Shown here in pieces: positions 35,801 to 64,000 of a stretch of DNA of 64,000 nucleotides. The notes under the pieces were generated by a model. It was not told the DNA's origin. It ran no database searches and was given only the letters and a program-made list of their open reading frames with translations. The position numbers and the translations under genes were made by a program. Numbering within the stretch: the first letter of the stretch is position 1; each line of letters opens with the position of its first letter. This DNA is from Monocercomonoides exilis PA203 (lineage: Eukaryota; Protista; Preaxostyla), in the NCBI GenBank assembly GCA_001643675.2, contig LSRY02000068.1, positions 186,001 through 250,000 of the forward strand. The letters run 5' to 3'.

Positions 35801-35978
35801 GAAACATGAATTAACACAAAAATCAGTCAATGAATCTTCCCAATCGATTATTTCTGGAATTTGCCCAATTTGCCAAAATCATTTATTGTATTCTGATTTA
35901 TTGAAACAGAGAAGAAACAGAATAAACAAAGAAAAAGAAAGTAGAATTGAGAAATTAAAGAAAAATACAAGATCATGA
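32802..35978 (+). CDS. SLX1: Structure-specific endonuclease SLX1 (GIY-YIG + C-terminal RING/PHD-type Zn finger), 4 exons, ~998 aa
   Basis: Exons 32802-32877, 32929-33014, 33066-33117 and 33196-35978 spell [37 protein letters not shown]...[36 protein letters not shown], the SLX1 signature. The C-terminal finger reads CFFC...[14 protein letters not shown]...CPIC. The ORF track (33366-35978) captures only part of exon 4. Confidence 0.92.
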
Positions 35979-42115: not shown

Positions 42116-42199
42116 TAGGTTAGGGTTAGGGTTAAGGGTTAGGGTTAGGTTAGGGTTAGGGTTAGGGTTAGGGTTAGGGTTAGGTTAGGTTAGGGTTAG
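42116..42199 (+). repeat. Interstitial telomeric tract (TTAGGG)n, ~14 units with TTAGG and TTAAGGG variants
   Basis: Seen directly. The G-rich strand is on +, so the implied chromosome end lies to the right. Confidence 0.95.
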
Positions 42200-42888
42200 A
42201 TCGGCCATGTGACAAAATGTTGATCTCCCATTAGTCTATCTTAACTTTCTTCAAAAACATTTCGTGATTTGAACCCATTTGACTACATTTTAATATCCCA
42301 AAGTGTTATTATTTAAGAAATTGTTGCTTTAATCCATGAATGTTGTTCAACATAGCTTGAATATTAACCCATGTGGTTGTCAATTATATGAATGTGTTCA
42401 CATGAATGTGCTCAATCATATTTATTTTCTTCGATCTTAATTAACTTTCATGATATCTTTCGAATTTTTGTTTGAAGAGTCAACCTATTTATTTTCATTT
42501 ATCCAAAAGAATGAAATTTAAATGAAAAGGAAAAGTGATCAATCACTTTGGTATCAGTTTGTAAATGTTTCAAATCTTTCAAACTTAATTTCTTTATCGC
42601 AAATGAATTTCAAATTGAATATTCAATATATTAAAATTATCAGGAAAAGATAATAAAACAATGATATGATTTATAATAATTATTGAAATCATATATGTGA
42701 ATCATGAAAATCAAATCAACCCAATGAAATTACAATTATCACGAAACATAGATAAATTTATTTATCTGAAATTATTGAAATTACCGATTATGACAGGAAA
42801 TTTTTTCAAAAAAATTTGAAGAATTAGCCAAAAAAAAAGAAAATTGACAAAGAAAAGTGGCCTTTAAAAGTGCATTTTTCACAAAAAT

Positions 42889-43017
42889 CTCCCATTATGG
42901 GAGGCTCTGGCGCGCTGTCCTCCCACCCACCCCAGCGCGCACCTGTAATCGAAGCCTCCTCCCCATTGGGCTTCGTTTACAGTCAAAATGAATTCAACTT
43001 CGTCGAATTCATTTTGA
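42889..43017. other. Cluster of four adjacent hairpins/inverted repeats, including a 13-9-13 site
   Basis: CTCCCAT-T-ATGGGAG (42889-42903); GCGCGCTG-15nt-CAGCGCGC (42910-42940); CTGTAATCGAAGCC-12nt-GGCTTCGTTTACAG (42943-42982, 1 mismatch); TCAAAATGAATTC-AACTTCGTC-GAATTCATTTTGA (42983-43017). Confidence 0.85.
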
Positions 43018-43323
43018 TAAAGTGCGCGCGTTATCACAACTGACGGTGTCATCTAACTTACACAGTTGCGCAATTTTAAGAATGTGCGAAAATAAAGAAA
43101 AGTGCATTTTACATTTAATTTGGATTATTTATATTTCAAATAAAACCTTGTGAACTCGCTAAATGCGAAAATAAAAGCGCAAATATCAAATTGGATTAAA
43201 CAATAAAAGTCAATGAAGAATTAATCTAACTTGAAAAACTGCGATCGTCAAAATGAAAATTAATAAATAAAAAGGTAAATTGAGTGATTATCGCACAGCA
43301 TTGCATGTGCGAACCTTCTGTAA

Positions 43324-46047
43324 TTACTTTTCATCCTTCTCTTTATCCTCACTCTCAGTTTGTTTTTCATCCTTCAGAACTTCTTCTTTGACATGCTCAA
43401 TCAATGTCTTCCTCGTTCTCATCTTCAGCCCTGCCATAGTTGTCCATCCTTCAACCAAACCCAAGTTTATCAATCTGTCTCTGCAGTCTGTCGGTAATCT
43501 AATCCTAAGCTCCTCCGCCATCTCCGAGTAACTCTTTCCTTCCTTCCGCATCCTTTTCAATGTCTCATCTTCTTCCTCGCTCCATCTCAATCTCTTTCTC
43601 CTTCCATTTTCATCTCTCTCCCTCTGCAGTGCTGCGTCATAATTATACACCTTTTTTCTCTTTATTTGCTTCATTTCCTTTTTCCCTTCCATCTCCTCTT
43701 TGTCCACTAACTCAATCAACTCCTCCGCTATCTTATTTTCGTCTTCTCCCTCTTCAATCCTTTGCGCAATCTTTCTCAATCCAACTTCCATTCTGCCATT
43801 CAAAATTGTTGAATGTCGACATCTCGATTTTTTGAAGTTTTTATGTTTTGAATATATTTCATATGCGTTTCTCTCCATCATTGCGTCATTCTTGACATAG
43901 CTGCAAATAGCTGACCTCCATGCACGTTGTTTGTAATAATATCGTTTCTTCTTTGTCGTTTTTTCATTTGATCCTGTTATGCCATTTACAGCAATCCTGC
44001 TTTTGAAATATATCCGAACCTTCCGCACTGCAAAACGATCGCTAACGTTATGATTGCAATTTTTATCTAACTTGATGTTGTGGAAAACTTCAATATCCAA
44101 CAATGCTTTTTCTATCACTTCTTTTCCATCAACGTCTGGATTCCCAATTCTGCTTGAAACGATTGTGGCAGATATTGCATTCTTTGCATATCTTTGCTGC
44201 ACAGCAGAATTGGGAACCCATCCCGCAATTGCAGCTGTGAATGTGAAAGTTGAGTCGCGCGAATGTGCATCCAAACCTGTTGCTAAAAGAGCCGAACACA
44301 TGAATCCACTTCTAAAAGAATGGAACGAAAAAAGGTTAATTGGATATCCCGCTGCTCTTGCTCGTAGCCTCAACCGCATTGACATGGAATCTCTTCTCCA
44401 ATTCCATATTTTTTGTTCCTTTTGCGTTTCTGTGAGAACCCAACAATCTCGATTATGAAGATCCAATTTAAAGCTTTTCTTCAAATGCTCGTTCAACCAA
44501 TATAACACATTCGTATTTGTCCTCTCTTCAAGATTGCCTTCCAATGTGACATCATGGTTCCACCTGATATTCCCTTTGGTTACTCGAAACTTCATTTTGA
44601 GAACTTTTGTGTCTTTCCCCACTGCATCAAGAATAACACCTATGTCTGATAACAGCACGTTGCACATTGTGACAGCTCTCGCACCCGTGGAAACTGCTGT
44701 CAACCACAGTGAAGCCTCCATAGCTTTGTCTGGATGCAAGTCACTTGTATTTTCAACGATTCTTTCCACGTCCTTCAAAAGGCATGGTTCTTTTCCACAT
44801 CCGTTCGGCTTAACACCTTTATCCACTCGCCCTTCCTTTATAACGAGTGAAATTGCATCTCTGACTTCTTCTGTTAACCTCTGTCCAGTAATTTCCGTAT
44901 TTATACGTTTTAAGCTACAAGCAAAGACATTTTCCACTGTATCTCTGGTGTAAATGCGACTTCTGTAACAAAATCGGAGAAAGGATGTGATGTTCTTCTC
45001 ATCCAATGGAAATCCATTCATATCTTTCATTTCACAAAATGCATCATAAACCTTTTGAACCCATGCATGTTTTTTAAGTGTTGACTCGCTATACACTGCT
45101 CCTGGCTCTTCAAAAGAATTCAATTCATCTTCAGACATCGATCTTATTTTTTTTATTGTATCAAATTCATTGACAGAACGATTAGAAATTGGTGTGCTAA
45201 CAGGACAAATGCACTTCTCATAACCTTCAGATATTGCTTGTTCCGACAGTTCATTCGTTTTTGAAACACTTTCGTTTTCCTTTGAATTGCAACCTTCCTG
45301 ATGCTGTTCTTCCCAAGAGTCTTTTTGAGAACTTGAAGGTTTCTCTTGATCTTTTCCTTTAACTTCCAATTTATCATCTATTCTGATTGATTCTGTGATA
45401 ACTTCATGCATTGATGATCTTTCTTTTCCTTCATTCAGATCAAACTGCTTGTTTTCCACATTCTGCTTCAACAATGCTGATATCAATGAACCTTCAGAAC
45501 TCACCTTTATCTGCTCTGTCTTTCCTTTTAATTTCGCAGTCTTTATTGAACTAGACTTCTTCTGTTTCTTCTTTCCAATTTGTCTGCACTTTTCCATCGA
45601 ACCCGAAGAACTGCTTTCAGTGAAATCGGTTGTGTCATCTTTCTTAACAATCTTGCGACAACCTGAATGATTTTTAATTTTTATCTTTCGCATCTTTCTC
45701 AGGTCAAAGGCATATTCCGATTCAGATGATGAAGAAGAACTCAATGTTTCCATGCTACACGAATCGCCTTCAATGTCTGAATCTTCAGATAAATCTATCA
45801 CGAACACCTCTTTCTTCTTCTTGCTTTCCATTGGCTTCTGCATTTCTTCTTTGACTTTGCTCTCTGATTCAAACTGTGAGATCTTCTTCATCAAAGGAGT
45901 TCTGAACTTTGGCTTGGATGAGATCAAAACAGTTTTCGATATGGAACCATCTTCACTGTCGCTCATAACGCTTCTGGACATCGATTTATTAAACTGCGCT
46001 GTGCACTTTGGATGTGGGACAAATTTAACATAATTTCTTGACAACAT
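43324..46047 (-). CDS. Tyrosine recombinase (phage integrase fold) fused to a C-terminal Myb/SANT DNA-binding domain
   Basis: Catalytic residues occur in canonical order: R in STGAR (44677-79), K in RVTKG (44575-77), H-x-x-R in FSFHSFRSG (44311-22), W in AGW (44218-20) and Y in QQRY (44188-90). A core-binding-like helical region (NITSFLRFC) precedes them. The Myb repeat reads KRLRWSEEEDETLKRMRKEGKSYSEMAEELRIRLPTDCRDRLINL (~43460-43600). The first ATG is at 46047. A short upstream exon (ATG 46289, intron 46091-46236) would also be in frame. Confidence 0.9.
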   Translation of the reverse strand: MLSRNYVKFVPHPKCTAQFNKSMSRSVMSDSEDGSISKTVLISSKPKFRTPLMKKISQFESESKVKEEMQKPMESKKKKEVFVIDLSEDSDIEGDSCSMETLSSSSSSESEYAFDLRKMRKIKIKNHSGCRKIVKKDDTTDFTESSSSGSMEKCRQIGKKKQKKSSSIKTAKLKGKTEQIKVSSEGSLISALLKQNVENKQFDLNEGKERSSMHEVITESIRIDDKLEVKGKDQEKPSSSQKDSWEEQHQEGCNSKENESVSKTNELSEQAISEGYEKCICPVSTPISNRSVNEFDTIKKIRSMSEDELNSFEEPGAVYSESTLKKHAWVQKVYDAFCEMKDMNGFPLDEKNITSFLRFCYRSRIYTRDTVENVFACSLKRINTEITGQRLTEEVRDAISLVIKEGRVDKGVKPNGCGKEPCLLKDVERIVENTSDLHPDKAMEASLWLTAVSTGARAVTMCNVLLSDIGVILDAVGKDTKVLKMKFRVTKGNIRWNHDVTLEGNLEERTNTNVLYWLNEHLKKSFKLDLHNRDCWVLTETQKEQKIWNWRRDSMSMRLRLRARAAGYPINLFSFHSFRSGFMCSALLATGLDAHSRDSTFTFTAAIAGWVPNSAVQQRYAKNAISATIVSSRIGNPDVDGKEVIEKALLDIEVFHNIKLDKNCNHNVSDRFAVRKVRIYFKSRIAVNGITGSNEKTTKKKRYYYKQRAWRSAICSYVKNDAMMERNAYEIYSKHKNFKKSRCRHSTILNGRMEVGLRKIAQRIEEGEDENKIAEELIELVDKEEMEGKKEMKQIKRKKVYNYDAALQRERDENGRRKRLRWSEEEDETLKRMRKEGKSYSEMAEELRIRLPTDCRDRLINLGLVEGWTTMAGLKMRTRKTLIEHVKEEVLKDEKQTESEDKEKDEK

Positions 46048-46477
46048 TTCTATATGTTCACAATTTCGTAACACCAAAAAAATGGCAACCCTTTTTAGTT
46101 ATATTTTTCATTTCAATTTAAGGGAAAATTGATATTTTCATAAATTAAATTGTGGTATCTATGAATAAATTAAACTAATATCGAAAAAAATTAATTAATA
46201 AAATACAATAATTAATTATCGATAAATATTAACTACAAATATTGTTCATTACATTCTTTGATTAATAATTCATTATTATTTGAGTTCATTATTGAAATAT
46301 TCGAAAAAATAAAGAAATAAAAATTATAAAAATACACAATTGCAATAAATATGAAATAATAATGATAATTGATAAAAATAAAAACATTAAATAAGTATTG
46401 AAAGTTTTGCGAGCCTGAACTCGAGTACAAAGTCGAGCGAAAAACATGCGAAGCATCGTTTTTGGCGAGACTTCGAA

Positions 46478-49400
46478 TCGCAGAGTGAAGGCGAGTAAGA
46501 GGGATGAGCGCTGCAGCGCTGTGCACCATCTGTGCAGCCCCTGTGCAGCACTCGCCTCTCCCAACCTCTCTGACTCCCCACTCTTTCCTCTCTCTCTTTC
46601 TCTCAACCCATCCATTTCCCTCTCTCTCTCTCAACCTCACCCTCACTTTTCTTTCCTCTCCTTTTTTCTCCTATTTTTTATAATTTACCTCATAGGGTGT
46701 GCACCCCATCCCTGCACTCCAAATCCTTCTCTCTCCATCCCTTCATCCCACACGATTTTTTTTATTCTTTTTTTCTCTTCCCTCTCTAACCTCTCTTTCT
46801 CCCTCATTCTCCTCTCTTCCCCAACTCCCCTCTCTCCCACACTTCATTCGCAGAGTGAAGGCGAGTAAGAGGGATGAGCGCTGCAGCGCTGTGCACCATC
46901 TGTGCAGCCCCTGTGCAGCACTCGCCTCTCCCAACCTCTCTGACTCCCCACTCTTTCCTCTCTCTCTTTCTCTCAACCCATCCATTTCCCTCTCTCTCTC
47001 TCAACCTCACCCTCACTTTTCTTTCCTCTCCTTTTTTCTCCTATTTTTTATAATTTACCTCATAGGGTGTGCACCCCATCCCTGCACTCCAAATCCTTCT
47101 CTCTCCATCCCTTCATCCCACACGATTTTTTTTATTCTTTTTTTCTCTTCCCTCTCTAACCTCTCTTTCTCCCTCATTCTCCTCTCTTCCCCAACTCCCC
47201 TCTCTCCCACACTTCATTCGCAGAGTGAAGGCGAGTAGAAGGGATGAGCGCTACAGCGCTGTGCACCATCTGTGCAGCCCCTGTGCAGCACTCGCCTCTC
47301 CCAACCTCTCTGACTCCCCACTCTTTCCTCTCTCTCTTTCTCTCAACCCATCCATTTCCCTCTCTCTCTCTCAACCTCACCCTCACTTTTCTTTCCTCTC
47401 CTTTTTTCTCCTATTTTTTATAATTTACCTCATAGGGTGTGCACCCCATCCCTGCACTCCAAATCCTTCTCTCTCCATCCCTTCATCCCACACGATTTTT
47501 TTTTATTCTTTTTTCTCTTCCCTCTCTAACCTCTCTTTCTCCCTCATTCTCCTCTCTTCCCCAACTCCCCTCTCTCCCACACTTCATTCGCAGGAGTGAA
47601 GGCGAGTAAGAAGGGATGAGCGCTACAGCGCTGTGCACCATCTGTGCAGCCCCTGTGCAGCACTCGCCTCTCCCAACCTCTCTGACTCCCCACTCTTTCC
47701 TCTCTCTCTTTCTCTCAACCCATCCATTTCCCTCTCTCTCTCTCAACCTCACCCTCACTTTTCTTTCCTCTCCTTTTTTCTCCTATTTTTTATAATTTAC
47801 CTCATAGGGTGTGCACCCCATCCCTGCACTCCAAATCCTTCTCTCTCCATCCCTTCATCCCACACGATTTTTTTATTCTTTTTTTCTCTTCCCTCTCTAA
47901 CCTCTCTTTCTCCCTCATTCTCCTCTCTTCCCCAACTCCCCTCTCTCCCACACTTCATTCGCAGAGTGAAGGCGAGTAAGAAGGGATGAGCGCTACAGCG
48001 CTGTGCACCATCTGTGCAGCCCCTGTGCAGCACTCGCCTCTCCCAACCTCTCTGACTCCCCACTCTTTCCTCTCTCTCTTTCTCTCAACCCATCCATTTC
48101 CCTCTCTCTCTCTCAACCTCACCCTCACTTTTCTTTCCTCTCCTTTTTTCTCCTATTTTTTATAATTTACCTCATAGGGTGTGCACCCCATCCCTGCACT
48201 CCAAATCCTTCTCTCTCCATCCCTTCATCCCACACGATTTTTTTTTATTCTTTTTTTCTCTTCCCTCTCTAACCTCTCTTTCTCCCTCATTCTCCTCTCT
48301 TCCCCAACTCCCCTCTCTCCCACACTTCATTCGCAGAGTGAAGGCGAGTAGAAGGGATGAGCGCTACAGCGCTGTGCACCATCTGTGCAGCCCCTGTGCA
48401 GCACTCGCCTCTCCCAACCTCTCTGACTCCCCACTCTTTCCTCTCTCTCTTTCTCTCAACCCATCCATTTCCCTCTCTCTCTCTCAACCTCACCCTCACT
48501 TTTCTTTCCTCTCCTTTTTTTCTCCTATTTTTTATAATTTACCTCATAGGGTGTGCACCCCATCCCTGCACTCCAAATCCTTCTCTCTCCATCCCTTCAT
48601 CCCACACGATTTTTTTATTCTTTTTTTCTCTTCCCTCTCTAACCTCTCTTTCTCCCTCATTCTCCTCTCTTCCCCAACTCCCCTCTCTCCCACACTTCAT
48701 TCGCAGAGTGAAGGCGAGTAAGAGGGATGAGCGCTGCAGCGCTGTGCACCATCTGTGCAGCCCCTGTGCAGCACTCGCCTCTCCCAACCTCTCTGACTCC
48801 CCACTCTTTCCTCTCTCTCTTTCTCTCAACCCATCCATTTCCCTCTCTCTCTCTCAACCTCACCCTCACTTTTCTTTCCTCTCCTTTTTTCTCCTATTTT
48901 TTATAATTTACCTCATAGGGTGTGCACCCCATCCCTGCACTCCAAATCCTTCTCTCTCCATCCCTTCATCCCACACGATTTTTTTTATTCTTTTTTTCTC
49001 TTCCCTCTCTAACCTCTCTTTCTCCCTCATTCTCCTCTCTTCCCCAACTCCCCTCTCTCCCACACTTCATTCGCAGAGTGAAGGCGAGTAAGAGGGATGA
49101 GCGCTACAGCGCTGTGCACCATCTGTGCAGCCCCTGTGCAGCACTCGCCTCTCCCAACCTCTCTGACTCCCCACTCTTTCCTCTCTCTCTTTCTCTCAAC
49201 CCATCCATTTCCCTCTCTCTCTCTCAACCTCACCCTCACTTTTCTTTTCCTCTCCTTTTTTTCTCCTATTTTTTATAATTTACCTCATAGGGTGTGCACC
49301 CCATCCCTGCACTCCAAATCCTTCTCTCTCCATCCCTTCATCCCACACGATTTTTTTATTCTTTTTTCTCTTCCCTCTCTAACCTCTCTTTCTCCCTCAT

Positions 49401-52400
49401 TCTCCTCTCTTCCCCAACTCCCCTCTCTCCCACACTTCATTCGCAGAGTGAAGGCGAGTAAGAAGGGATGAGCGCTACAGCGCTGTGCACCATCTGTGCA
49501 GCCCCTGTGCAGCACTCGCCTCTCCCAACCTCTCTGACTCCCCACTCTTTCCTCTCTCTCTTTCTCTCAACCCATCCATTTCCCTCTCTCTCTCTCAACC
49601 TCACCCTCACTTTTCTTTCCTCTCCTTTTTTCTCCTATTTTTTATAATTTACCTCATAGGGTGTGCACCCCATCCCTGCACTCCAAATCCTTCTCTCTCC
49701 ATCCCTTCATCCCACACGATTTTTTTATTCTTTTTTTCTCTTCCCTCTCTAACCTCTCTTTCTCCCTCATTCTCCTCTCTTCCCCAACTCCCCTCTCTCC
49801 CACACTTCATTCGCAGGAGTGAAGGCGAGTAGAAGGGATGAGCGCTACAGCGCTGTGCACCATCTGTGCAGCCCCTGTGCAGCACTCGCCTCTCCCAACC
49901 TCTCTGACTCCCCACTCTTTCCTCTCTCTCTTTCTCTCAACCCATCCATTTCCCTCTCTCTCTCTCAACCTCACCCTCACTTTTCTTTCCTCTCCTTTTT
50001 TCTCCTATTTTTTATAATTTACCTCATAGGGTGTGCACCCCATCCCTGCACTCCAAATCCTTCTCTCTCCATCCCTTCATCCCACACGATTTTTTTTATT
50101 CTTTTTTTCTCTTCCCTCTCTAACCTCTCTTTCTCCCTCATTCTCCTCTCTTCCCCAACTCCCTCTCTCCCACACTTCATTCGCAGAGTGAAGGCGAGTA
50201 AGAAGGGATGAGCGCTACAGCGCTGTGCACCATCTGTGCAGCCCCTGTGCAGCACTCGCCTCTCCCAACCTCTCTGACTCCCCACTCTTTCCTCTCTCTC
50301 TTTCTCTCAACCCATCCATTTCCCTCTCTCTCTCTCAACCTCACCCTCACTTTTCTTTCCTCTCCTTTTTTTCTCCTATTTTTTATAATTTACCTCATAG
50401 GGTGTGCACCCCATCCCTGCACTCCAAATCCTTCTCTCTCCATCCCTTCATCCCACACGATTTTTTTATTCTTTTTTTCTCTTCCCTCTCTAACCTCTCT
50501 TTCTCCCTCATTCTCCTCTCTTCCCCAACTCCCCTCTCTCCCACACTTCATTCGCAGGAGTGAAGGCGAGTAAGAAGGGATGAGCGCTACAGCGCTGTGC
50601 ACCATCTGTGCAGCCCCTGTGCAGCACTCGCCTCTCCCAACCTCTCTGACTCCCCACTCTTTCCTCTCTCTCTTTCTCTCAACCCATCCATTTCCCTCTC
50701 TCTCTCTCAACCTCACCCTCACTTTTCTTTCCTCTCCTTTTTTCTCCTATTTTTTATAATTTACCTCATAGGGTGTGCACCCCATCCCTGCACTCCAAAT
50801 CCTTCTCTCTCCATCCCTTCATCCCACACGATTTTTTTTTATTCTTTTTTTCTCTTCCCTCTCTAACCTCTCTTTCTCCCTCATTCTCCTCTCTTCCCCA
50901 ACTCCCCTCTCTCCCACACTTCATTCGCAGAGTGAAGGCGAGTAAGAAGGGATGAGCGCTACAGCGCTGTGCACCATCTGTGCAGCCCCTGTGCAGCACT
51001 CGCCTCTCCCAACCTCTCTGACTCCCCACTCTTTCCTCTCTCTCTTTCTCTCAACCCATCCATTTCCCTCTCTCTCTCTCAACCTCACCCTCACTTTTCT
51101 TTCCTCTCCTTTTTCTCCTATTTTTTATAATTTACCTCATAGGGTGTGCACCCCATCCCTGCACTCCAAATCCTTCTCTCTCCATCCCTTCATCCCACAC
51201 GATTTTTTTTTATTCTTTTTTTCTCTTCCCTCTCTAACCTCTCTTTCTCCCTCATTCTCCTCTCTTCCCCAACTCCCTCTCTCCCACACTTCATTCGCAG
51301 AGTGAAGGCGAGTAAGAAGGGATGAGCGCTACAGCGCTGTGCACCATCTGTGCAGCCCCTGTGCAGCACTCGCCTCTCCCAACCTCTCTGACTCCCCACT
51401 CTTTCCTCTCTCTCTTTCTCTCAACCCATCCATTTCCCTCTCTCTCTCTCAACCTCACCCTCACTTTTCTTTCCTCTCCTTTTTCTCCTATTTTTTATAA
51501 TTTACCTCATAGGGTGTGCACCCCATCCCTGCACTCCAAATCCTTCTCTCTCCATCCCTTCATCCCACACGATTTTTTTTTATTCTTTTTTCTCTTCCCT
51601 CTCTAACCTCTCTTTCTCCCTCATTCTCCTCTCTTCCCCAACTCCCTCTCTCCCACACTTCATTCGCAGAGTGAAGGCGAGTAAGAAGGGATGAGCGCTA
51701 CAGCGCTGTGCACCATCTGTGCAGCCCCTGTGCAGCACTCGCCTCTCCCAACCTCTCTGACTCCCCACTCTTTCCTCTCTCTCTTTCTCTCAACCCATCC
51801 ATTTCCCTCTCTCTCTCTCAACCTCACCCTCACTTTTCTTTCCTCTCCTTTTTCTCCTATTTTTTTATAATTTACCTCATAGGGTGTGCACCCCATCCCT
51901 GCACTCCAAATCCTTCTCTCTCCATCCCTTCATCCCACACGATTTTTTTTTATTCTTTTTTTCTCTTCCCTCTCTAACCTCTCTTTCTCCCTCATTCTCC
52001 TCTCTTCCCCAACTCCCTCTCTCCCACACTTCATTCGCAGAGTGAAGGCGAGTAAGAGGGATGAGCGCTACAGCGCTGTGCACCATCTGTGCAGCCCCTG
52101 TGCAGCACTCGCCTCTCCCAACCTCTCTGACTCCCCACTCTTTCCTCTCTCTCTTTCTCTCAACCCATCCATTTCCCTCTCTCTCTCTCAACCTCACCCT
52201 CACTTTTCTTTCCTCTCCTTTTTCTCCTATTTTTTATAATTTACCTCATAGGGTGTGCACCCCATCCCTGCACTCCAAATCCTTCTCTCTCCATCCCTTC
52301 ATCCCACACGATTTTTTTTATTCTTTTTTTCTCTTCCCTCTCTAACCTCTCTTTCTCCCTCATTCTCCTCTCTTCCCCAACTCCCTCTCTCCCACACTTC

Positions 52401-55400: not shown

Positions 55401-58400
55401 GCACCATCTGTGCAGCCCCTGTGCAGCACTCGCCTCTCCCAACCTCTCTGACTCCCCACTCTTTCCTCTCTCTCTTTCTCTCAACCCATCCATTTCCCTC
55501 TCTCTCTCAACCTCACCCTCACTTTTCTTTCCTCTCCTTTTTTTCTCCTATTTTTTATAATTTACCTCATAGGGTGTGCACCCCATCCCTGCACTCCAAA
55601 TCCTTCTCTCTCCATCCCTTCATCCCACACGATTTTTTTTATTCTTTTTTTCTCTTCCCTCTCTAACCTCTCTTTCTCCCTCATTCTCCTCTCTTCCCCA
55701 ACTCCCCTCTCTCCCACACTTCATTCGCAGAGTGAAGGCGAGTAAGAGGGATGAGCGCTGCAGCGCTGTGCACCATCTGTGCAGCCCCTGTGCAGCACTC
55801 GCCTCTCCCAACCTCTCTGACTCCCCACTCTTTCCTCTCTCTCTTTCTCTCAACCCATCCATTTCCCTCTCTCTCTCTCAACCTCACCCTCACTTTTCTT
55901 TCCTCTCCTTTTTCTCCTATTTTTTATAATTTACCTCATAGGGTGTGCACCCCATCCCTGCACTCCAAATCCTTCTCTCTCCATCCCTTCATCCCACACG
56001 ATTTTTTTTATTCTTTTTTCTCTTCCCTCTCTAACCTCTCTTTCTCCCTCATTCTCCTCTCTTCCCCAACTCCCCTCTCTCCCACACTTCATTCGCAGAG
56101 TGAAGGCGAGTAGAAGGGATGAGCGCTGCAGCGCTGTGCACCATCTGTGCAGCCCCTGTGCAGCACTCGCCTCTCCCAACCTCTCTGACTCCCCACTCTT
56201 TCCTCTCTCTCTTTCTCTCAACCCATCCATTTCCCTCTCTCTCTCTCAACCTCACCCTCACTTTTCTTTCCTCTCCTTTTTCTCCTATTTTTATAATTTA
56301 CCTCATAGGGTGTGCACCCCATCCCTGCACTCCAAATCCTTCTCTCTCCATCCCTTCATCCCACACGATTTTTTTATTCTTTTTTTCTCTTCCCTCTCTA
56401 ACCTCTCTTTCTCCCTCATTCTCCTCTCTTCCCCAACTCCCTCTCTCCCACACTTCATTCGCAGGTGAAGGCGAGTAAGAAGGGATGAGCGCTACAGCGC
56501 TGTGCACCATCTGTGCAGCCCCTGTGCAGCACTCGCCTCTCCCAACCTCTCTGACTCCCCACTCTTTCCTCTCTCTCTTTCTCTCAACCCATCCATTTCC
56601 CTCTCTCTCTCTCAACCTCACCCTCACTTTTCTTTCCTCTCCTTTTTCTCCTATTTTTTATAATTTACCTCATAGGGTGTGCACCCCATCCCTGCACTCC
56701 AAATCCTTCTCTCTCCATCCCTTCATCCCACACGATTTTTTTATTCTTTTTCTCTTCCCTCTCTAACCTCTCTTTCTCCCTCATTCTCCTCTCTTCCCCA
56801 ACTCCCTCTCTCCCACACTTCATTCGCAGAGTGAAGGCGAGTAAGAGGGATGAGCGCTGCAGCGCTGTGCACCATCTGTGCAGCCCCTGTGCAGCACTCG
56901 CCTCTCCCAACCTCTCTGACTCCCCACTCTTTCCTCTCTCTCTTTCTCTCAACCCATCCATTTCCCTCTCTCTCTCTCAACCTCACCCTCACTTTTCTTT
57001 CCTCTCCTTTTTCTCCTATTTTTTATAATTTACCTCATGGGGTGTGCACCCCATCCCTGCACTCCAAATCCTTCTCTCTCCATCCCTTCATCCCACACGA
57101 TTTTTTTTATTCTTTTTTTCTCTTCCCTCTCTAACCTCTCTTTCTCCCTCATTCTCCTCTCTTCCCCAACTCCCCTCTCTCCCACACTTCATTCGCAGAG
57201 TGAAGGCGAGTAAGAAGGGATGAGCGCTGCAGCGCTGTGCACCATCTGTGCAGCCCCTGTGCAGCACTCGCCTCTCCCAACCTCTCTGACTCCCCACTCT
57301 TTCCTCTCTCTTTCTCTCAACCCATCCATTTCCCTCTCTCTCTCAACCTCACCCTCACTTTTCTTTCCTCTCCTTTTTCTCCTATTTTTTATAATTTACC
57401 TCATAGGGTGTGCACCCCATCCCTGCACTCAAATCCTTCTCTCTCCATCCCTTCATCCCACACGATTTTTTTTATTCTTTTTTCTCTTCCCTCTCTAACC
57501 TCTCTTTCTCCCTCATTCTCCTCTCTTCCCCAACTCCCCTCTCTCCCACACTTCATTCGCAGGAGTGAAGGCGAGTAAGAGGATGAGCGCTACAGCGCTG
57601 TGCACCATCTGTGCAGCCCCTGTGCAGCACTCGCCTCTCCCAACCTCTCTGACTCCCCACTCTTTCCTCTCTCTCTTTCTCTCAACCCATCCATTTCCCT
57701 CTCTCTCTCTCAACCTCACCCTCACTTTTCTTTCCTCTCCTTTTTCTCCTATTTTTATAATTTACCTCATAGGGTGTGCACCCCATCCCTGCACTCCAAA
57801 TCCTTCTCTCTCCATCCCTTCATCCCACACGATTTTTTTTTATTCTTTTTTCTCTTCCCTCTCTAACCTCTCTTTCTCCCTCATTCTCCTCTCTTCCCCA
57901 ACTCCCTCTCTCCCACACTTCATTCGCAGAGTGAAGGCGAGTAAGAAGGGATGAGCGCTACAGCGCTGTGCACCATCTGTGCAGCCCCTGTGCAGCACTC
58001 GCCTCTCCCAACCTCTCTGACTCCCCACTCTTTCCTCTCTCTCTTTCTCTCAACCCATCCATTTCCCTCTCTCTCTCTCAACCTCACCCTCACTTTTCTT
58101 TCCTCTCCTTTTTCTCCTATTTTTTATAATTTACCTCATAGGGTGTGCACCCCATCCCTGCACTCCAAATCCTTCTCTCTCCATCCCTTCATCCCACACG
58201 ATTTTTTTATTCTTTTTCTCTTCCCTCTCTAACCTCTCTTTCTCCCTCATTCTCCTCTCTTCCCCAACTCCCCTCTCTCCCACACTTCATTCATGAGTGA
58301 AGGCGAGTAAGAAGGGATGAGCGCTGCAGCGCTGTGCACCATCTGTGCAGCCCCTGTGCAGCACTCGCCTCTCCCAACCTCTCTGACTCCCCACTCTTTC

Positions 58401-61400
58401 CTCTCTCTCTTTCTCTCAACCCATCCATTTCCCTCTCTCTCTCTCAACCTCACCCTCACTTTTCTTTCCTCTCCTTTTTCTCCTATTTTTTATAATTTAC
58501 CTCATAGGGTGTGCACCCCATCCCTGCACTCCAAATCCTTCTCTCTCCATCCCTTCATCCCACACGATTTTTTTTTATTCTTTTTTCTCTTCCCTCTCTA
58601 ACCTCTCTTTCTCCCTCATTCTCCTCTCTTCCCCAACTCCCTCTCTCCCACACTTCATTCGCAGAGTGAAGGCGAGTAAGAGGATGAGCGCTGCAGCGCT
58701 GTGCACCATCTGTGCAGCCCCTGTGCAGCACTCGCCTCTCCCAACCTCTCTGACTCCCCACTCTTTCCTCTCTCTCTTTCTCTCAACCCATCCATTTCCC
58801 TCTCTCTCTCTCAACCTCACCCTCACTTTTCTTTCCTCTCCTTTTTTTCTCCTATTTTTTATAATTTACCTCATAGGGTGTGCACCCCATCCCTGCACTC
58901 CAAATCCTTCTCTCTCCATCCCTTCATCCCACACGATTTTTTTTTATTCTTTTTTTCTCTTCCCTCTCTAACCTCTCTTTCTCCCTCATTCTCCTCTCTT
59001 CCCCAACTCCCTCTCTCCCACACTTCATTCGCAGAGTGAAGGCGAGTAGAAGGGATGAGCGCTGCAGCGCTGTGCACCATCTGTGCAGCCCCTGTGCAGC
59101 ACTCGCCTCTCCCAACCTCTCTGACTCCCCACTCTTTCCTCTCTCTCTTTCTCTCAACCCATCCATTTCCCTCTCTCTCTCTCAACCTCACCCTCACTTT
59201 TCTTTCCTCTCCTTTTTCTCCTATTTTTTATAATTTACCTCATAGGGTGTGCACCCCATCCCTGCACTCCAAATCCTTCTCTCTCCATCCCTTCATCCCA
59301 CACGATTTTTTTTTATTCTTTTTTTCTCTTCTAACCTCTCTTTCTCCCTCATTCTCCTCTCTTCCCCAACTCCCCTCTCTCCCACACTTCATTCGCAGAG
59401 TGAAGGCGAGTAAGAAGGGATGAGCGCTACAGCGCTGTGCACCATCTGTGCAGCCCCTGTGCAGCACTCGCCTCTCCCAACCTCTCTGACTCCCCACTCT
59501 TTCCTCTCTCTCTTTCTCTCAACCCATCCATTTCCCTCTCTCTCTCTCAACCTCACCCTCACTTTTCTTTCCTCTCCTTTTTCTCCTATTTTTTATAATT
59601 TACCTCATAGGGTGTGCACCCCATCCCTGCACTCCAAATCCTTCTCTCTCCATCCCTTCATCCCACACGATTTTTTTTATTCTTTTTTCTCTTCCCTCTC
59701 TAACCTCTCTTTCTCCCTCATTCTCCTCTCTTCCCCAACTCCCCTCTCTCCCACACTTCATTCGCAGAGTGAAGGCGAGTAAGAGGGATGAGCGCTACAG
59801 CGCTGTGCACCATCTGTGCAGCCCCTGTGCAGCACTCGCCTCTCCCAACCTCTCTGACTCCCCACTCTTTCCTCTCTCTCTTTCTCTCAACCCATCCATT
59901 TCCCTCTCTCTCTCTCAACCTCACCCTCACTTTTCTTTCCTCTCCTTTTTCTCCTATTTTTATAATTTACCTCATAGGGTGTGCACCCCATCCCTGCACT
60001 CCAAATCCTTCTCTCTCCATCCCTTCATCCCACACGATTTTTTTTATTCTTTTTTTCTCTTCCCTCTCTAACCTCTCTTTCTCCCTCATTCTCCTCTCTT
60101 CCCCAACTCCCCTCTCTCCCACACTTCATTCATGAGTGAAGGCGAGTAAGAGGGATGAGCGCTACAGCGCTGTGCACCATCTGTGCAGCCCTGTGCAGCA
60201 CTCGCCTCTCCCAACCTCTCTGACTCCCCACTCTTTCCTCTCTCTCTTTCTCTCAACCCATCCATTTCCCTCTCTCTCTCTCAACCTCACCCTCACTTTT
60301 CTTTCCTCTCCTTTTTCTCCTATTTTTTATAATTTACCTCATAGGGTGTGCACCCCATCCCTGCACTCCAAATCCTTCTCTCTCCATCCCTTCATCCCAC
60401 GATTTTTTTTTATTCTTTTTTCTCTTCCCTCTCTAACCTCTCTTTCTCCCTCATTCTCCTCTCTTCCCCAACTCCCCTCTCTCCCACACTTCATTCATGA
60501 GTGAAGGCGAGTAAGAGGGATGAGCGCTGCAGCGCTGTGCACCATCTGTGCAGCCCCTGTGCAGCACTCGCCTCTCCCAACCTCTCTGACTCCCCACTCT
60601 TTCCTCTCTCTCTTTCTCTCAACCCATCCATTTCCCTCTCTCTCTCTCAACCTCACCCTCACTTTTCTTTCCTCTCCTTTTTCTCCTATTTTTATAATTT
60701 ACCTCATAGGGTGTGCACCCCATCCCTGCACTCCAAATCCTTCTCTCTCCATCCCTTCATCCCACGATTTTTTTTATTCTTTTTTCTCTTCCCTCTCTAA
60801 CCTCTCTTTCTCCCTCATTCTCCTCTCTTCCCCAACTCCCCTCTCTCCACACTTCATTCATAGAGTGAAGGCGAGTAAGAGGATGAGCGCTACAGCGCTG
60901 TGCACCATCTGTGCAGCCCCTGTGCAGCACTCGCCTCTCCCAACCTCTCTGACTCCCCACTCTTTCCTCTCTCTCTTTCTCTCAACCCATCCATTTCCCT
61001 CTCTCTCTCTCAACCTCACCCTCACTTTTCTTTCCTCTCCTTTTTTCTCCTATTTTTTTATAATTTTACCTCATAGGGTGTGCACCCCATCCCTGCACTC
61101 CAAATCCTTCTCTCTCCATCCTTCATCCCACACGATTTTTTTTATTCTTTTTTTCTCTTCCCTCTCTAACCTCTCTTTCTCCCTCATTCTCCTCTCTTCC
61201 CCAACTCCCCTCTCTCCCACACTTCATTCGCAGAGTGAAGGCGAGTAAGAAGGGATGAGCGCTACAGCGCTGTGCACCATCTGTGCAGCCCCTGTGCAGC
61301 ACTCGCCTCTCCCAACCTCTCTGACTCCCCACTCTTTCCTCTCTCTCTTTCTCTCAACCCATCCATTTCCCTCTCTCTCTCTCAACCTCACCCTCACTTT

Positions 61401-64000
61401 TCTTTCCTCTCCTTTTTCTCCTATTTTTATAATTTACCTCATAGGGTGTGCACCCCATCCCTGCACTCCAAATCCTTCTCTCTCCATCCCTTCATCCCAC
61501 ACGATTTTTTTTATTCTTTTTTTCTCTTCCCTCTCTAACCTCTCTTTCTCCCTCATTCTCCTCTCTTCCCCAACTCCCCTCTCTCCCACACTTCATTCGC
61601 GGAGTGAAGGCGAGTAGAAGGGATGAGCGCTACAGCGCTGTGCACCATCTGTGCAGCCCCTGTGCAGCACTCGCCTCTCCCAACCTCTCTGACTCCCCAC
61701 TCTTTCCTCTCTCTCTTTCTCTCAACCCATCCATTTCCCTCTCTCTCTCTCAACCTCACCCTCACTTTTCTTTCCTCTCCTTTTTCTCCTATTTTTTATA
61801 ATTTACCTCATAGGGTGTGCACCCCATCCCTGCACTCCAAATCCTTCTCTCTCCATCCCTTCATCCCACACGATTTTTTTTTATTCTTTTTTTCTCTTCC
61901 CTCTCTAACCTCTCTTTCTCCCTCATTCTCCTCTCTTCCCCAACTCCCCTCTCTCCCACACTTCATTCGCAGAGTGAAGGCGAGTAAGAGGGATGAGGCA
62001 GCGCTGTGCACCATCTGTGCAGCCCCTGTGCAGCACTCGCCTCTCCCAACCTCTCTGACTCCCCACTCTTTCCTCTCTCTCTTTCTCTCAACCCATCCAT
62101 TTCCCTCTCTCTCTCTCAACCTCACCCTCACTTTTCTTTCCTCTCCTTTTTTCTCCTATTTTTTATAATTTACCTCATAGGGTGTGCACCCCATCCCTGC
62201 ACTCCAAATCCTTCTCTCTCCATCCCTTCATCCCACACGATTTTTTTTATTCTTTTTTTCTCTTCCCTCTCTAACCTCTCTTTCTCCCTCATTCTCCTCT
62301 CTTCCCCAACTCCCCTCTCTCCCACACTTCATTCGCAGAGTGAAGGCGAGTAAGAGGGATGAGCGCTGCAGCGCTGTGCACCATCTGTGCAGCCCCTGTG
62401 CAGCACTCGCCTCTCCCAACCTCTCTGACTCCCCACTCTTTCCTCTCTCTCTTTCTCTCAACCCATCCATTTCCCTCTCTCTCTCTCAACCTCACCCTCA
62501 CTTTTCTTTCCTCTCCTTTTTTCTCCTATTTTTATAATTTACCTCATAGGGTGTGCACCCCATCCCTGCACTCAAATCCTTCTCTCTCCATCCCTTCATC
62601 CACGATTTTTTTTATTCTTTTTTCTCTTCCCTCTCTAACCTCTCTTTCTCCCTCATTCTCCTCTCTTCCCCAACTCCCCTCTCTCCACACTTCATTCGCA
62701 GGAGTGAAGGCGGAGTAAGAAGGGATGAGCGCTACAGCGCTGTGCACCATCTGTGCAGCCCTGTGCAGCACTCGCCTCTCCCAACCTCTCTGACTCCCCA
62801 CTCTTTCCTCTCTCTCTTTCTCTCAACCCATCCATTTCCCTCTCTCTCTCTCAACCTCACCCTCACTTTTCTTTCCTCTCCTTTTTCTCCTATTTTTTAT
62901 AATTTACCTCATAGGGTGTGCACCCCATCCCTGCACTCCAAATCCTTCTCTCTCCATCCCTTCATCCCACACGATTTTTTATTCTTTTTTCTCTTCCCTC
63001 TCTAACCTCTCTTTCTCCCTCATTCTCCTCTCTTCCCAACTCCCTCTCTCCCACACTTCATTCGCGGAGTGAAGGCGAGTAAGAGGGATGAGCGCTGCAG
63101 CGCTGTGCACCATCTGTGCAGCCCCTGTGCAGCACTCGCCTCTCCCAACCTCTCTGACTCCCCACTCTTTCCTCTCTCTCTTTCTCTCAACCCATCCATT
63201 TCCCTCTCTCTCTCTCAACCTCACCCTCACTTTTCTTTCCTCTCCTTTTTCTCCTATTTTTATAATTTACCTCATAGGGTGTGCACCCCATCCCTGCACT
63301 CCAAATCCTTCTCTCTCCATCCCTTCATCCCACGATTTTTTATTCTTTTTTTCTCTTCCCTCTCTAACCTCTCTTTCTCCCTCATTCTCCTCTCTTCCCC
63401 AACTCCCCTCTCTCCCACACTTCATTCGCAGAGTGAAGGCGAGTAAGAGGGATGAGCGCTACAGCACTGTGCACCATCTGTGCAGCCCCTGTGCAGCACT
63501 CGCCTCTCCCAACCTCTCTGACTCCCCACTCTTTCCTCTCTCTCTTTCTCTCAACCCATCCATTTCCCTCTCTCTCTCTCAACCTCACCCTCACTTTTCT
63601 TTCCTCTCCTTTTTCTCCTATTTTTTATAATTTACCTCATAGGGTGTGCACCCCATCCCTGCACTCCAAATCCTTCTCTCTCCATCCCTTCATCCCACAC
63701 GATTTTTTTATTCTTTTTTTCTCTTCCCTCTCTAACCTCTCTTTCTCCCTCATTCTCCTCTCTTCCCCAACTCCCTCTCTCCCACACTTCATTCGCAGAG
63801 TGAAGGCGAGTAAGAGGGATGAGCGCTACAGCGCTGTGCACCATCTGTGCAGCCCCTGTAGCACTCGCCTCTCCCAACCTCTCTGACTCCCCACTCTTTC
63901 CTCTCTCTCTTTCTCTCAACCCATCCATTTCCCTCTCTCTCTCTCAACCTCACCCTCACTTTTCTTTCCTCTCCTTTTTCTCCTATTTTTATAATTTACC
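46478..64000 (+). repeat. Tandem array of a ~370-bp unit, ~47 copies visible, continuing beyond the window
   Basis: The unit starts TCGCAGAGTGAAGGCGAGT at 46478, 46848, 47218 and so on. The + strand is strongly pyrimidine-rich. Copies differ mainly by homopolymer indels and one G/A site (GCGCTGCAGCGC vs GCGCTACAGCGC). Confidence 0.98.

Follow-up and report, generated by a model that had tools for sequence, protein, structure and literature searches.

A tyrosine recombinase-Myb element joined to telomere repeats at chromosome ends of Monocercomonoides exilis

The window analysed here is a 64,000-nucleotide stretch of the Monocercomonoides exilis contig LSRY02000068.1 (record positions 186001-250000; full contig 255,432 bp), and all coordinates are those of the window unless stated otherwise. 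It contains an element of about 4.3 kb (42200-46469) whose one gene encodes a tyrosine recombinase (YR) fused to a Myb domain. An earlier note, made from the sequence alone, had listed five features at this locus (tract, junction, inverted-repeat cluster, open reading frame and array), all of which were found again at the same positions. The features are as follows.

42118-42199, plus strand: short interstitial (TTAGGG)n tract, period 6, about 14 copies, 92% matches
42200-42206, minus strand: element terminus ATCGGCC (sense strand GGCCGAT), abutting the tract and recurring in the window, L002 and L010
42200-43323, minus strand: element 3' non-coding region, 1.1 kb, AT-rich
42880-43030, minus strand: GC-rich double-hairpin island in the 3' region, from inverted repeats and RNA fold
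43324-45981, minus strand: YR-Myb gene, public model P0001 of 885 aa, with the open frame continuing to 46077
43465-43593, minus strand: single C-terminal Myb/SANT repeat, P0001 residues ~797-839, from Pfam PF00249 and the family profile
44095-45084, minus strand: tyrosine recombinase region, P0001 residues 300-629, a core-binding-like helical domain plus a catalytic domain
45982-46469, minus strand: AT-rich 5' region up to the array, presumed promoter and 5' UTR
46470-64000, no strand assigned: satellite array with a 370-bp unit, on the distal side of the element and not counted here as part of it, 47.6 copies, 98% matches

The G strand of the interstitial tract is directed at the contig end. 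Its start, the inner boundary, reads ...TTTGAC/TAGGTTAGGG, and the 42199/42200 junction with the element is sharp (...GGTTAG/ATCGGCCATGTGAC). Allowing at most 2 mismatches, (TTAGGG)3 matched 6 times in the tract, against an expectation of 0, and had no match in the rest of the window. No telomere tract was found at the 46469/46470 boundary between the 5' side of the element and the array, and neither inverted nor direct long repeats were found at the termini of the window element. A capped fragment at a second chromosome end matches the final ~530 nt of the 3' region (42200-42728) with 89% identity. Within the hairpin island, the inverted-repeat arms lie at 42943-42956/42969-42982 (14 nt, 93%) and 42983-42998/43002-43017 (16 nt, 94%), both pairs are surrounded by a GCGCGC stem, and the RNA fold of 42840-43060 has a z-score of -5.4 relative to shuffles. 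Rfam returned no match at E<=1 on 42000-47600, hammerhead ribozymes included, and a tRNA scan across the window found none; a 3' hammerhead and a tRNA-type target for the element were excluded on these two results. The array is strongly C/T-rich and, as the window stops at 250000 of 255,432 bp, extends at least as far as 5.4 kb short of the contig end. An array of identical type lies upstream of the L002 copy, which is 99% identical to the window copy, and L001 and L002 share 99% identity across 13.8 kb, array included; comparison with a 361-bp array next to the L007 copy gave no similarity.

The gene occupies an uninterrupted minus-strand reading frame (43324-46077, 917 aa from a TTG codon), the single long one within 42200-46469. 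YR is the only enzyme of the element, and Pfam finds Myb alone on its protein. The N-terminal ~300 aa are rich in Ser, Lys and Glu. Residues R435, K469, H554, R557, W588 and Y598 of P0001 form the catalytic set in the canonical YR order, and this hexad was invariant in 17/17 aligned homologs and in 38/38 full-length rows, ciliate-code members included. The window protein taken alone left Pfam and PDB sequence searches nearly blank; its assignment needed profiles built from the family and a search by fold. An AlphaFold model of the protein (pLDDT 80) was compared with the PDB using Foldseek, for which the best match was Cre (E 3.6e-6, ~320 columns), followed by XerA, IntI, lambda Int and XerH, with a probability of 1.0 for all. 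The product is a Cre-like two-domain tyrosine recombinase with a complete hexad. Pfam Phage_integrase did not match the window protein and matched 3 of the 17 relatives (best E 4e-4), and the family profile reached XerD in the PDB at E 0.045. Pfam DUF3504 matched neither the window protein nor any of the 17 relatives; this domain is a mark of Crypton-derived host genes, not of Cryptons themselves. For the end copies L003 and L004, dN/dS was 0.15 at a dS of 1.0, and the YR-Myb protein is under purifying selection.

On the window protein, PF00249 scored 20.4 bits, under its cut-off of 24.4, and it matched 16/17 family members (best E 3.5e-11). With the family profile, c-Myb repeats were reached at E ~1e-8 per repeat and, over the whole chain, SNAPc4 at 2.3e-17 and Reb1 at 1.4e-9; TRF1, TRF2 and Tbf1 reached ~1e-5 at best. 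The earlier note had proposed a Myb domain of the kind that reads duplex telomere repeats. A single Myb/SANT repeat is indeed present, but the telobox/TRF-type identity, which had been suggested by motifs picked out by eye, was dropped on the preference of the profile search for c-Myb-type repeats. Because the profile lies much closer to c-Myb, SNAPc4 and Reb1 than to TRF1/2 and Tbf1, reading of the telomere repeat by this domain, and hence Myb-guided targeting, is put forward here only as a role that the domain may have.

The YR-Myb element forms a multi-copy family tied to telomere repeats, in agreement with the first proposal, and is not a single-copy host gene. All 8 placed M. exilis loci, each on its own contig, are at most 36 kb away from a contig end. 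They were placed among at least 16 gene loci, the others including MONOS_16053, 12610, 16142, 14102, 15790, 16905, 7977 and 17651, and the locus comparison covered the material outside the contigs of P0010 and P0011 and the last 5.4 kb of the window contig. Terminal TTAGGG arrays of 2.6-3.9 kb are found at L003, L004, L005, L006 and L010, with the gene 0-5.2 kb away; at L008, where the flanks are short, no telomere tract was found. Several deep lineages occur together in this one genome, and the catalytic set is intact in all of them.

The ATCGGCC terminus and a short tract are joined at three chromosome ends (window, L002 and L010), each with a different inner flank; with this and the position of all placed copies near contig ends, the check that the earlier note had set came out positive. 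The L010 copy, being 89% identical to the window copy, represents a separate lineage. Two subfamilies were distinguished. The gene 5' end points toward the chromosome end in the A subfamily and the 3' end does so in the B subfamily, and orientation is constant within each. In the A subfamily the 3' end runs into telomere repeats in reverse complement, the 5' side is truncated by telomere repeats and copies are stacked at ends; the B subfamily is joined to the tract via its 5' end. Each element has a defined end that in every case abuts a short tract of host repeat, which fixes how the subfamily is oriented toward the chromosome end.

The chromosome ends of M. exilis consist of stacked whole and truncated copies separated by tracts of 11-84 nt, so that the suggestion that these elements make up the subtelomere is upheld. 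Every interstitial tract found in this species falls within 11-84 nt, and terminal arrays measure kilobases. At 14 of the 17 inner tract junctions, the window tract included, the tract starts with (T)TAGGTTAGG, which is a signature of de novo addition (healing), and the outer caps, that of the full-length L004 copy included, uniformly begin in the same way. Random insertion into long telomeres was judged unlikely because of the shortness of the interstitial tracts and the uniform healing start at the outer caps. The interpretation of the earlier note is partly supported; the M. exilis pattern fits better with joining to ends that are short or freshly healed, or with copying primed by tracts, than with random insertion into a kilobase-long telomere. 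Unrelated repeated modules are also present in the end stacks.

Relatives were sought in other hosts, and the YR-Myb family comprises 293 cluster representatives at E<=1e-30. TTAGGG tracts flank the metagenome relatives L009, L011, L012, L016, L018, L031 and L035, and TTGGGG tracts of one polarity flank L019-L029; part of the shortness of the tracts in these metagenome contigs may come from assembly of short reads. The L019-L029 contigs yield full-length YR-Myb open reading frames only under the ciliate genetic code and form one clade in a quick tree. In L026-L029, a 3.19-kb ciliate-code unit is 99.6-99.9% identical, lies with precise ends between a tract on either side and has three different right-hand neighbours. 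Ciliate-code elements also occur in head-to-tail tandems. The M. exilis terminus recurs with different flanks, and the tract type changes with the host.

These junctions could in principle arise in assembly, either as ONT chimeras formed at a telomere-like tract or, in the metagenome contigs, as gene-sized ciliate chromosomes that assembly fused telomere to telomere. The contigs do end in repeats, and the evidence is drawn from assembled contigs. The same terminus-to-tract junction, on the other hand, is present in three contigs and the layout is repeated at five loci with true telomeric ends, which makes a chimeric assembly, a possibility raised in the earlier note, unlikely. For the ciliate-code units, joined minichromosomes would put a G tract against a C tract, yet the two tracts have the same polarity, and the nanochromosome version was rejected on this ground. 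An artefact of either kind is considered extremely unlikely.

In our view, 42200-46469 is probably one copy of a small (~3-4.5 kb) single-gene family of mobile DNA living in telomere repeats, and the best reading of the family is a widespread group of Crypton-like YR elements with a specificity for telomere repeats. The recombinase would act on the directly repeated telomere tracts at both flanks of the element and excise a circle carrying one tract, and the circle would re-enter a telomere tract elsewhere. By a second route, which could operate instead or as well, the tract of the circle or of another end may pair with a short or newly healed telomere, after which the element would be copied onto that chromosome end and the new terminus re-capped by telomerase; repeated cycles would produce the layered subtelomeres of M. 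exilis. The catalysis of the joining step by the YR, the contribution of the Myb domain and the circular intermediate are all inferred. The sequences examined showed no recombination event, no circle and no empty site. Telomere repeats have no dyad symmetry and would be unusual as a YR core site.

A different account, regarded as unlikely, likens the copies to yeast Y' and sees in them a host gene family of the subtelomere. Blocks would spread between ends solely by break-induced replication from short telomeres that invade interstitial tracts, and the YR-Myb protein would either be a passenger or serve, after domestication, in some telomere function, for example capping or the maintenance of ends by recombination. 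Short tracts, the healing signature at the inner boundary, distal truncation with re-capping of copies and the unrelated modules within the stacks are all compatible with it, as is purifying selection on the protein, and the 99% identity of L001 and L002 over 13.8 kb including the array is expected of end-to-end copying. Crypton-derived host genes also exist, and WOC, which is one of them, localises to telomeres (PMC3212892). Break-induced copying, however, takes everything distal to the tract, whereas the 3.19-kb ciliate-code unit is precise at both ends and its neighbours differ on both sides; the A1 terminus is found again beside an unrelated flank in a lineage that is 89% identical; multiple deep lineages in one genome are all catalytically intact; and membership and tract type follow very different hosts. 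Break-induced copying without any YR step could nevertheless be the source of much of the M. exilis mosaic.

It was also considered whether the element is a non-autonomous retroelement, whose RNA would pair through a telomere-complementary 3' stretch with the G-overhang and be reverse-transcribed onto ends, as in the Athena/Terminon Penelope-like elements and HeT-A. The A-type anatomy resembles that of Terminons in its reverse-complement repeats at the 3' end, 5' truncation and head-to-tail stacks (PMC6431247). Against this, the element has no reverse transcriptase reading frame and no hammerhead or other Rfam motif (Rfam, 42000-47600), and its sole open reading frame is a conserved, catalytically intact YR. 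B-type and ciliate-code elements, moreover, are joined by their 5' end and their sense strand is the G strand, so priming by the G-overhang on sense RNA is excluded for them. This reading is regarded as very unlikely.

The mobile YR family remains the preferred reading. Because the family adjoins telomere repeats at every chromosome end examined and its relatives are flanked by the repeat of their own host, it looks like a kind of telomere-targeting mobile DNA that is as yet undescribed, and a literature search found no published account, in agreement with the expectation of the earlier note. A broader and more tentative proposal, which we consider possible but would not call probable, is an old and widely distributed superfamily of telomere-targeting YR transposons ('telomere Cryptons'), with an attachment site tracking the host repeat (TTAGGG for oxymonads and some other hosts, TTGGGG for ciliates) and building a chromosome-end compartment; such elements may back up short or broken ends and may explain the C4A2 blocks of Tetrahymena Tel-1. 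To our knowledge, telomere-specific mobile elements have so far been retroelements and giant viruses, to which Helitrons were added very recently. A compact telomere YR element would, if confirmed, be a third DNA-based route to chromosome-end building, and would supply a simple one-protein system that may both recognise and recombine telomere repeats. It would provide a handle on how subtelomeres arise once ends have broken and healed, in a protist that has ~40-50 chromosomes, and the host-matched tracts, TTAGGG against TTGGGG, would constitute a natural experiment in target specificity.

The view that known telomere-specific elements are retroelements has to be qualified, as DNA-based precedents exist among Helitrons (PMC13085455) and nimavirus YRs (PMC10871703). 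The closest known systems are Cryptons, which are YR-only eukaryotic DNA transposons; in CryptonF the YR is combined with a C-terminal GCR1_C domain and the termini carry 6-bp direct repeats (PMC3212892). The M. exilis element likewise has one open reading frame, YR as its sole enzyme and a C-terminal DNA-binding domain, with no LTRs, TIRs or reverse transcriptase, and the A1 terminus and the 3.19-kb unit are Crypton-like in having defined ends in different contexts and flanking direct repeats that are multiples of the 6-bp telomere unit. Unlike Cryptons, it lies at telomere repeats or near chromosome ends at all 8 placed loci, Myb replaces GCR1_C and DUF3504 is not matched; a place in one of the named Crypton groups (F, S, A and I) is no more than possible.

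The germline Helitrons of Paramecium, inserted in C4A2 telomere repeats (PMC13085455, 2026), are also DNA elements with telomere repeats of the same polarity on both sides, an element-specific absolute orientation and a role in forming a chromosome-end compartment. They differ in being much larger, with a Rep/helicase, a 9-10-kb open reading frame and no YR. In the endogenous nimaviruses of crustaceans, YRs specific for the telomere motif (TAACC)n (PMC10871703) similarly link a YR to integration into the host telomere motif. Each of these is one gene of a 200-360-kb genome, however, with C2H2/SAM-like N-terminal domains and no Myb, and acts on telomere-like microsatellites generally. Athena/Terminon elements, which are EN-deficient Penelope-like retroelements (PMC6431247), share with the A subfamily the 3' end followed by a short reverse-complement telomere stretch, the 5' truncation by repeats and the head-to-tail stacks, but have a reverse transcriptase and a 3' hammerhead ribozyme, neither of which the YR-Myb element has, and the B subfamily is joined by the opposite end.

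Tetrahymena Tel-1 has internal C4A2 blocks at the ends of a transposon-like element (Cherry & Blackburn 1985, as cited in PMC13085455). Tel-1 and Oxytricha TBE1 are germline elements of ciliates that have short blocks of telomere repeat at their borders, and the TTGGGG-flanked relatives look alike, for Tel-1 by description only; TBE1 differs in its DDE transposase and inverted terminal telomere repeats. The Tel-1 C4A2 blocks are, as far as we know, still uncharacterised. Yeast Y' encodes a helicase and spreads by recombination onto short telomeres. It resembles the M. exilis ends in its repeated end blocks, with short interstitial tracts between blocks and next to the core, and differs in carrying a helicase instead of the YR-Myb protein.

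The earlier note had described a telomere-repeat tract, a sharp junction, hairpins, an open reading frame and a 370-bp array in the right part of the window, and each of these was confirmed where it had been placed:

42118-42199: (TTAGGG)n tract
42200: sharp junction from the tract to ATCGGCC
42943-43017: GC-rich hairpin pair (fold z = -5.4)
43324-46077, minus strand: open frame of the tyrosine recombinase (YR)-Myb gene
Up to the window end: 370-bp array, 47.6 copies

The leftmost 42 kb of the window carries ordinary genes. At 12-20924 (plus strand), a single frame of 6970 aa is open throughout and resembles VPS13 in its N-terminal region (Pfam E 9e-38); it is a giant but otherwise ordinary host gene, which shows that this side of the window is normal chromosome. 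At 33366-35978 (plus strand), an 870-aa ORF resembled the SLX1 C-terminal domain weakly, below threshold (E 1e-3). A Ser-rich ORF of 139 aa, present in the annotation (41687-42106, minus strand), starts only 11 nt from the telomere tract, so that the tract itself forms its upstream region, as a past chromosome break healed at this point would predict. The product of the YR-Myb frame is identical to an M. exilis protein, and the window belongs to the 255,432-bp oxymonad contig LSRY02000068.1 (assembly GCA_001643675.2), where record positions equal window positions plus 186000. M. exilis telomeres are TTAGGG with a mean length of ~2.1 kb (PMC6759080), and neither M. exilis genome paper mentions recombinase or subtelomeric elements (PMC6759080, PMC8767320). 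The 3' region of the element (window 42200-43323) and those of two other M. exilis loci, L003 and L004, consist of DNA of 26-30% GC with 3-5 TGGGTT motifs each and 0-1 complements; the motif equals one G-strand-like unit, of polarity opposite to the flanking tract.

Searched alone, the window protein gave a Myb match only, below threshold. Alignment of 17 homologs revealed an invariant R...K...H-x-x-R...W...Y set (R435, K469, H554, R557, W588, and Y598 in the 885-aa numbering), and no full-length row of a broader set, 38 in all, lacked any of these six residues. The AlphaFold model of residues 300-885 (pLDDT 80) matched Cre best, over ~320 columns, followed by XerA, IntI, lambda Int, and XerH. 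The catalytic set and these Cre-like structural matches identify the protein as a two-domain tyrosine recombinase, intact as judged by its sequence. The C-terminal domain had been suggested to guide the element to telomeric repeats. It is a true Myb repeat (Pfam match in 16 of 17 members), but it bears no mark of a telomere reader, its profile being nearest to c-Myb, SNAPc4, and Reb1, with TRF1, TRF2, and Tbf1 about a thousand-fold worse. The L003 and L004 genes differ with a dS of 1.0 and a dN/dS of 0.15, which indicates old, separately maintained copies under protein-level selection. The N termini of five metagenome relatives (P0006, P0007, P0008, P0011, and P0014) contain a C-x2-C...(Y/C)C(S/G)-x2-C motif resembling FCS/MYM-type zinc fingers, which was not confirmed by Pfam.

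The M. exilis survey covered eight placed loci on eight contigs, about half of at least 16 genes. All eight lay no more than 36 kb from a contig end; none sat at a random internal site lacking TTAGGG, the gene was not a single-copy host gene, and a chimeric assembly is unlikely. The expectation that copies would be telomere-joined and near contig ends was thus borne out, with one terminus common to three ends that differ in their inner flanks. Three copies of the A type, sharing 52-55% identity with the window protein, were found at true chromosome ends. Each shows, from the end inwards, a terminal (CCCTAA)n array of 2.6-3.9 kb, the gene with its 5' end turned to the telomere, a non-coding stretch of 0.5-1.4 kb, and a short inner tract with the polarity of the terminal array; the DNA beyond is unrelated. 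B-type copies (28-33% identical; L006, L007, L010, and a second copy in L002) were also at ends, in the opposite orientation and frequently in tandem. In LSRY02000027.1 (L002), 19 kb from the contig start, a 99%-identical twin of the window copy is likewise flanked 5' by this array; homology breaks off at the same GGCCGAT, followed by a ~12-nt tract and then different DNA. L010 contains a 536-nt fragment that matches the final 530 nt of the window element at 89% identity. It shares the terminus, which here adjoins a 28-nt tract and an inner flank unrelated to the other two, and at its opposite end it is capped by the 3.5-kb terminal telomere.

The twin gene (L002 10001-12722) is divided into three reading frames by two frameshifts at ~10726 and ~11718, which reflect either ONT error or recent pseudogenization; the public gene model spans both as introns. 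Five or six tandem ~62-nt repeats occupy the 5' region of the A2 copies (L004 3620-4000, L003 4350-4585), each carrying the start-codon context (GACTATGCC..AATTTT), and may be spare promoters or starts facing an eroding end. A 361-bp satellite, unrelated to the 370-bp unit of the window, lies on the contig-end side of the B-type copy in L007 (15176-22989), so satellites distal to these elements recur.

Read along the G strand, M. exilis ends consist of stacked layers. Each layer begins directly after a short tract of 11-84 nt and runs to a truncation point, beyond which comes either a further tract or the terminal array. Across all tract boundaries of L001-L006 and L010, 14 of the 17 junctions at which non-telomeric DNA passes into a G tract began with (T)TAGGTTAGG, including those of the unique DNA left of the window tract (42117/42118), the truncated L005 gene, and the L010 fragment. 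The most plausible source of so uniform a start is de novo telomerase addition, and the register suggests a fixed start of such addition in M. exilis. Given a telomerase-type start at the inner tract boundaries, the element-specific step is the joining of a fixed element end, 3' in A types and 5' in B types, to the far side of the tract. Beside A-type ends, the first ~30 nt of tract had the same succession of short and long units in the window as in L010, L003, and L004, which suggests that the element carries a portion of the tract along with it. Other modules were also seen: a 135-nt module with a short tract, 98.7% identical at two ends with different flanks (L004 7738-7889, L005 4754-4905), resembles the end piece of a further element, and a subtelomeric module, 82-88% identical and without a long ORF, was present in both orientations (L004 9398-10778, L005 12261-13642, L006 15837-17230, L010 15032-15507), the L010 copy being bounded by short tracts.

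A profile search over 1.8 billion representatives matched 293 clusters at E<=1e-30 and 1256 at E<=1e-10, among which M. exilis, with its at least 16 genes, was the sole named source. A scan of JGI metagenomes yielded 27 loci, many with telomere-type tracts adjoining the gene. The tract type follows the host: TTAGGG in L009, L011 (118 nt, at the contig end), L012, L016, L018, L031, and L035, and TTGGGG in the lake contigs L019-L029, whose long ORFs exist under the ciliate nuclear code only. Translation with that code gives full-length YR-Myb proteins (E about 1e-110; positions 10-576 of the 591-position profile; catalytic set complete), which formed one clade with a support of 100 in a quick tree. 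Their element ends are exact (...AAAGTGAATAAAGGG / (TTGGGG)n of 17-47 nt / AGGAGCAACTCG...). A second ORF of ~315-350 aa was noted (L019 1781-2794, L024 2041-3090, L022 2165-3112); its stop-free piece at L019 1785-2303 gave weak low-complexity Pfam matches only. In L026-L029, a 3.19-kb unit, 99.6-99.9% identical, is flanked by two tracts of the same polarity and followed by three different elements; head-to-tail tandems are also present. The common tract polarity excludes, for these units, both telomerase action on the two termini of a linear molecule and the joining of gene-sized chromosomes end to end during assembly. Transposition yields discrete units of this kind, whose two ends are fixed and whose neighbours vary; copying of all the sequence distal to a tract would not.

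We consider it likely that the family is a telomere-repeat-specific YR element of Crypton-like design. The recombinase would recombine the flanking direct tracts to release a circle and re-integrate it at another tract, and the Myb domain may help in site finding. That inner tracts are short and outer caps healed in M. exilis argues for joining at short or freshly healed ends, or for tract-primed copying from the circle or another end. Reverse transcription primed from the G-overhang is unlikely, since the element contains neither a reverse transcriptase (Pfam) nor a ribozyme (Rfam), and in the B-type and ciliate elements the joined end is the wrong one for such priming. For M. exilis alone, a pure Y'-like host family is a possible but less likely reading.

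No published account of a compact YR element restricted to telomere repeats turned up in a full-text literature search. In crustacean nimaviruses, YRs are tied to (TAACC)n (PMC10871703), and Paramecium germline chromosomes are capped by Helitrons in C4A2 repeats with absolute orientation bias, in a 2026 report that also recalls Tetrahymena Tel-1 and Oxytricha TBE1 (PMC13085455). Terminons share their junction anatomy with the A types (PMC6431247). Cryptons, single-gene elements with 6-bp direct repeats, have in common with the window element the one-gene design of a YR with a C-terminal DNA-binding domain (PMC3212892).
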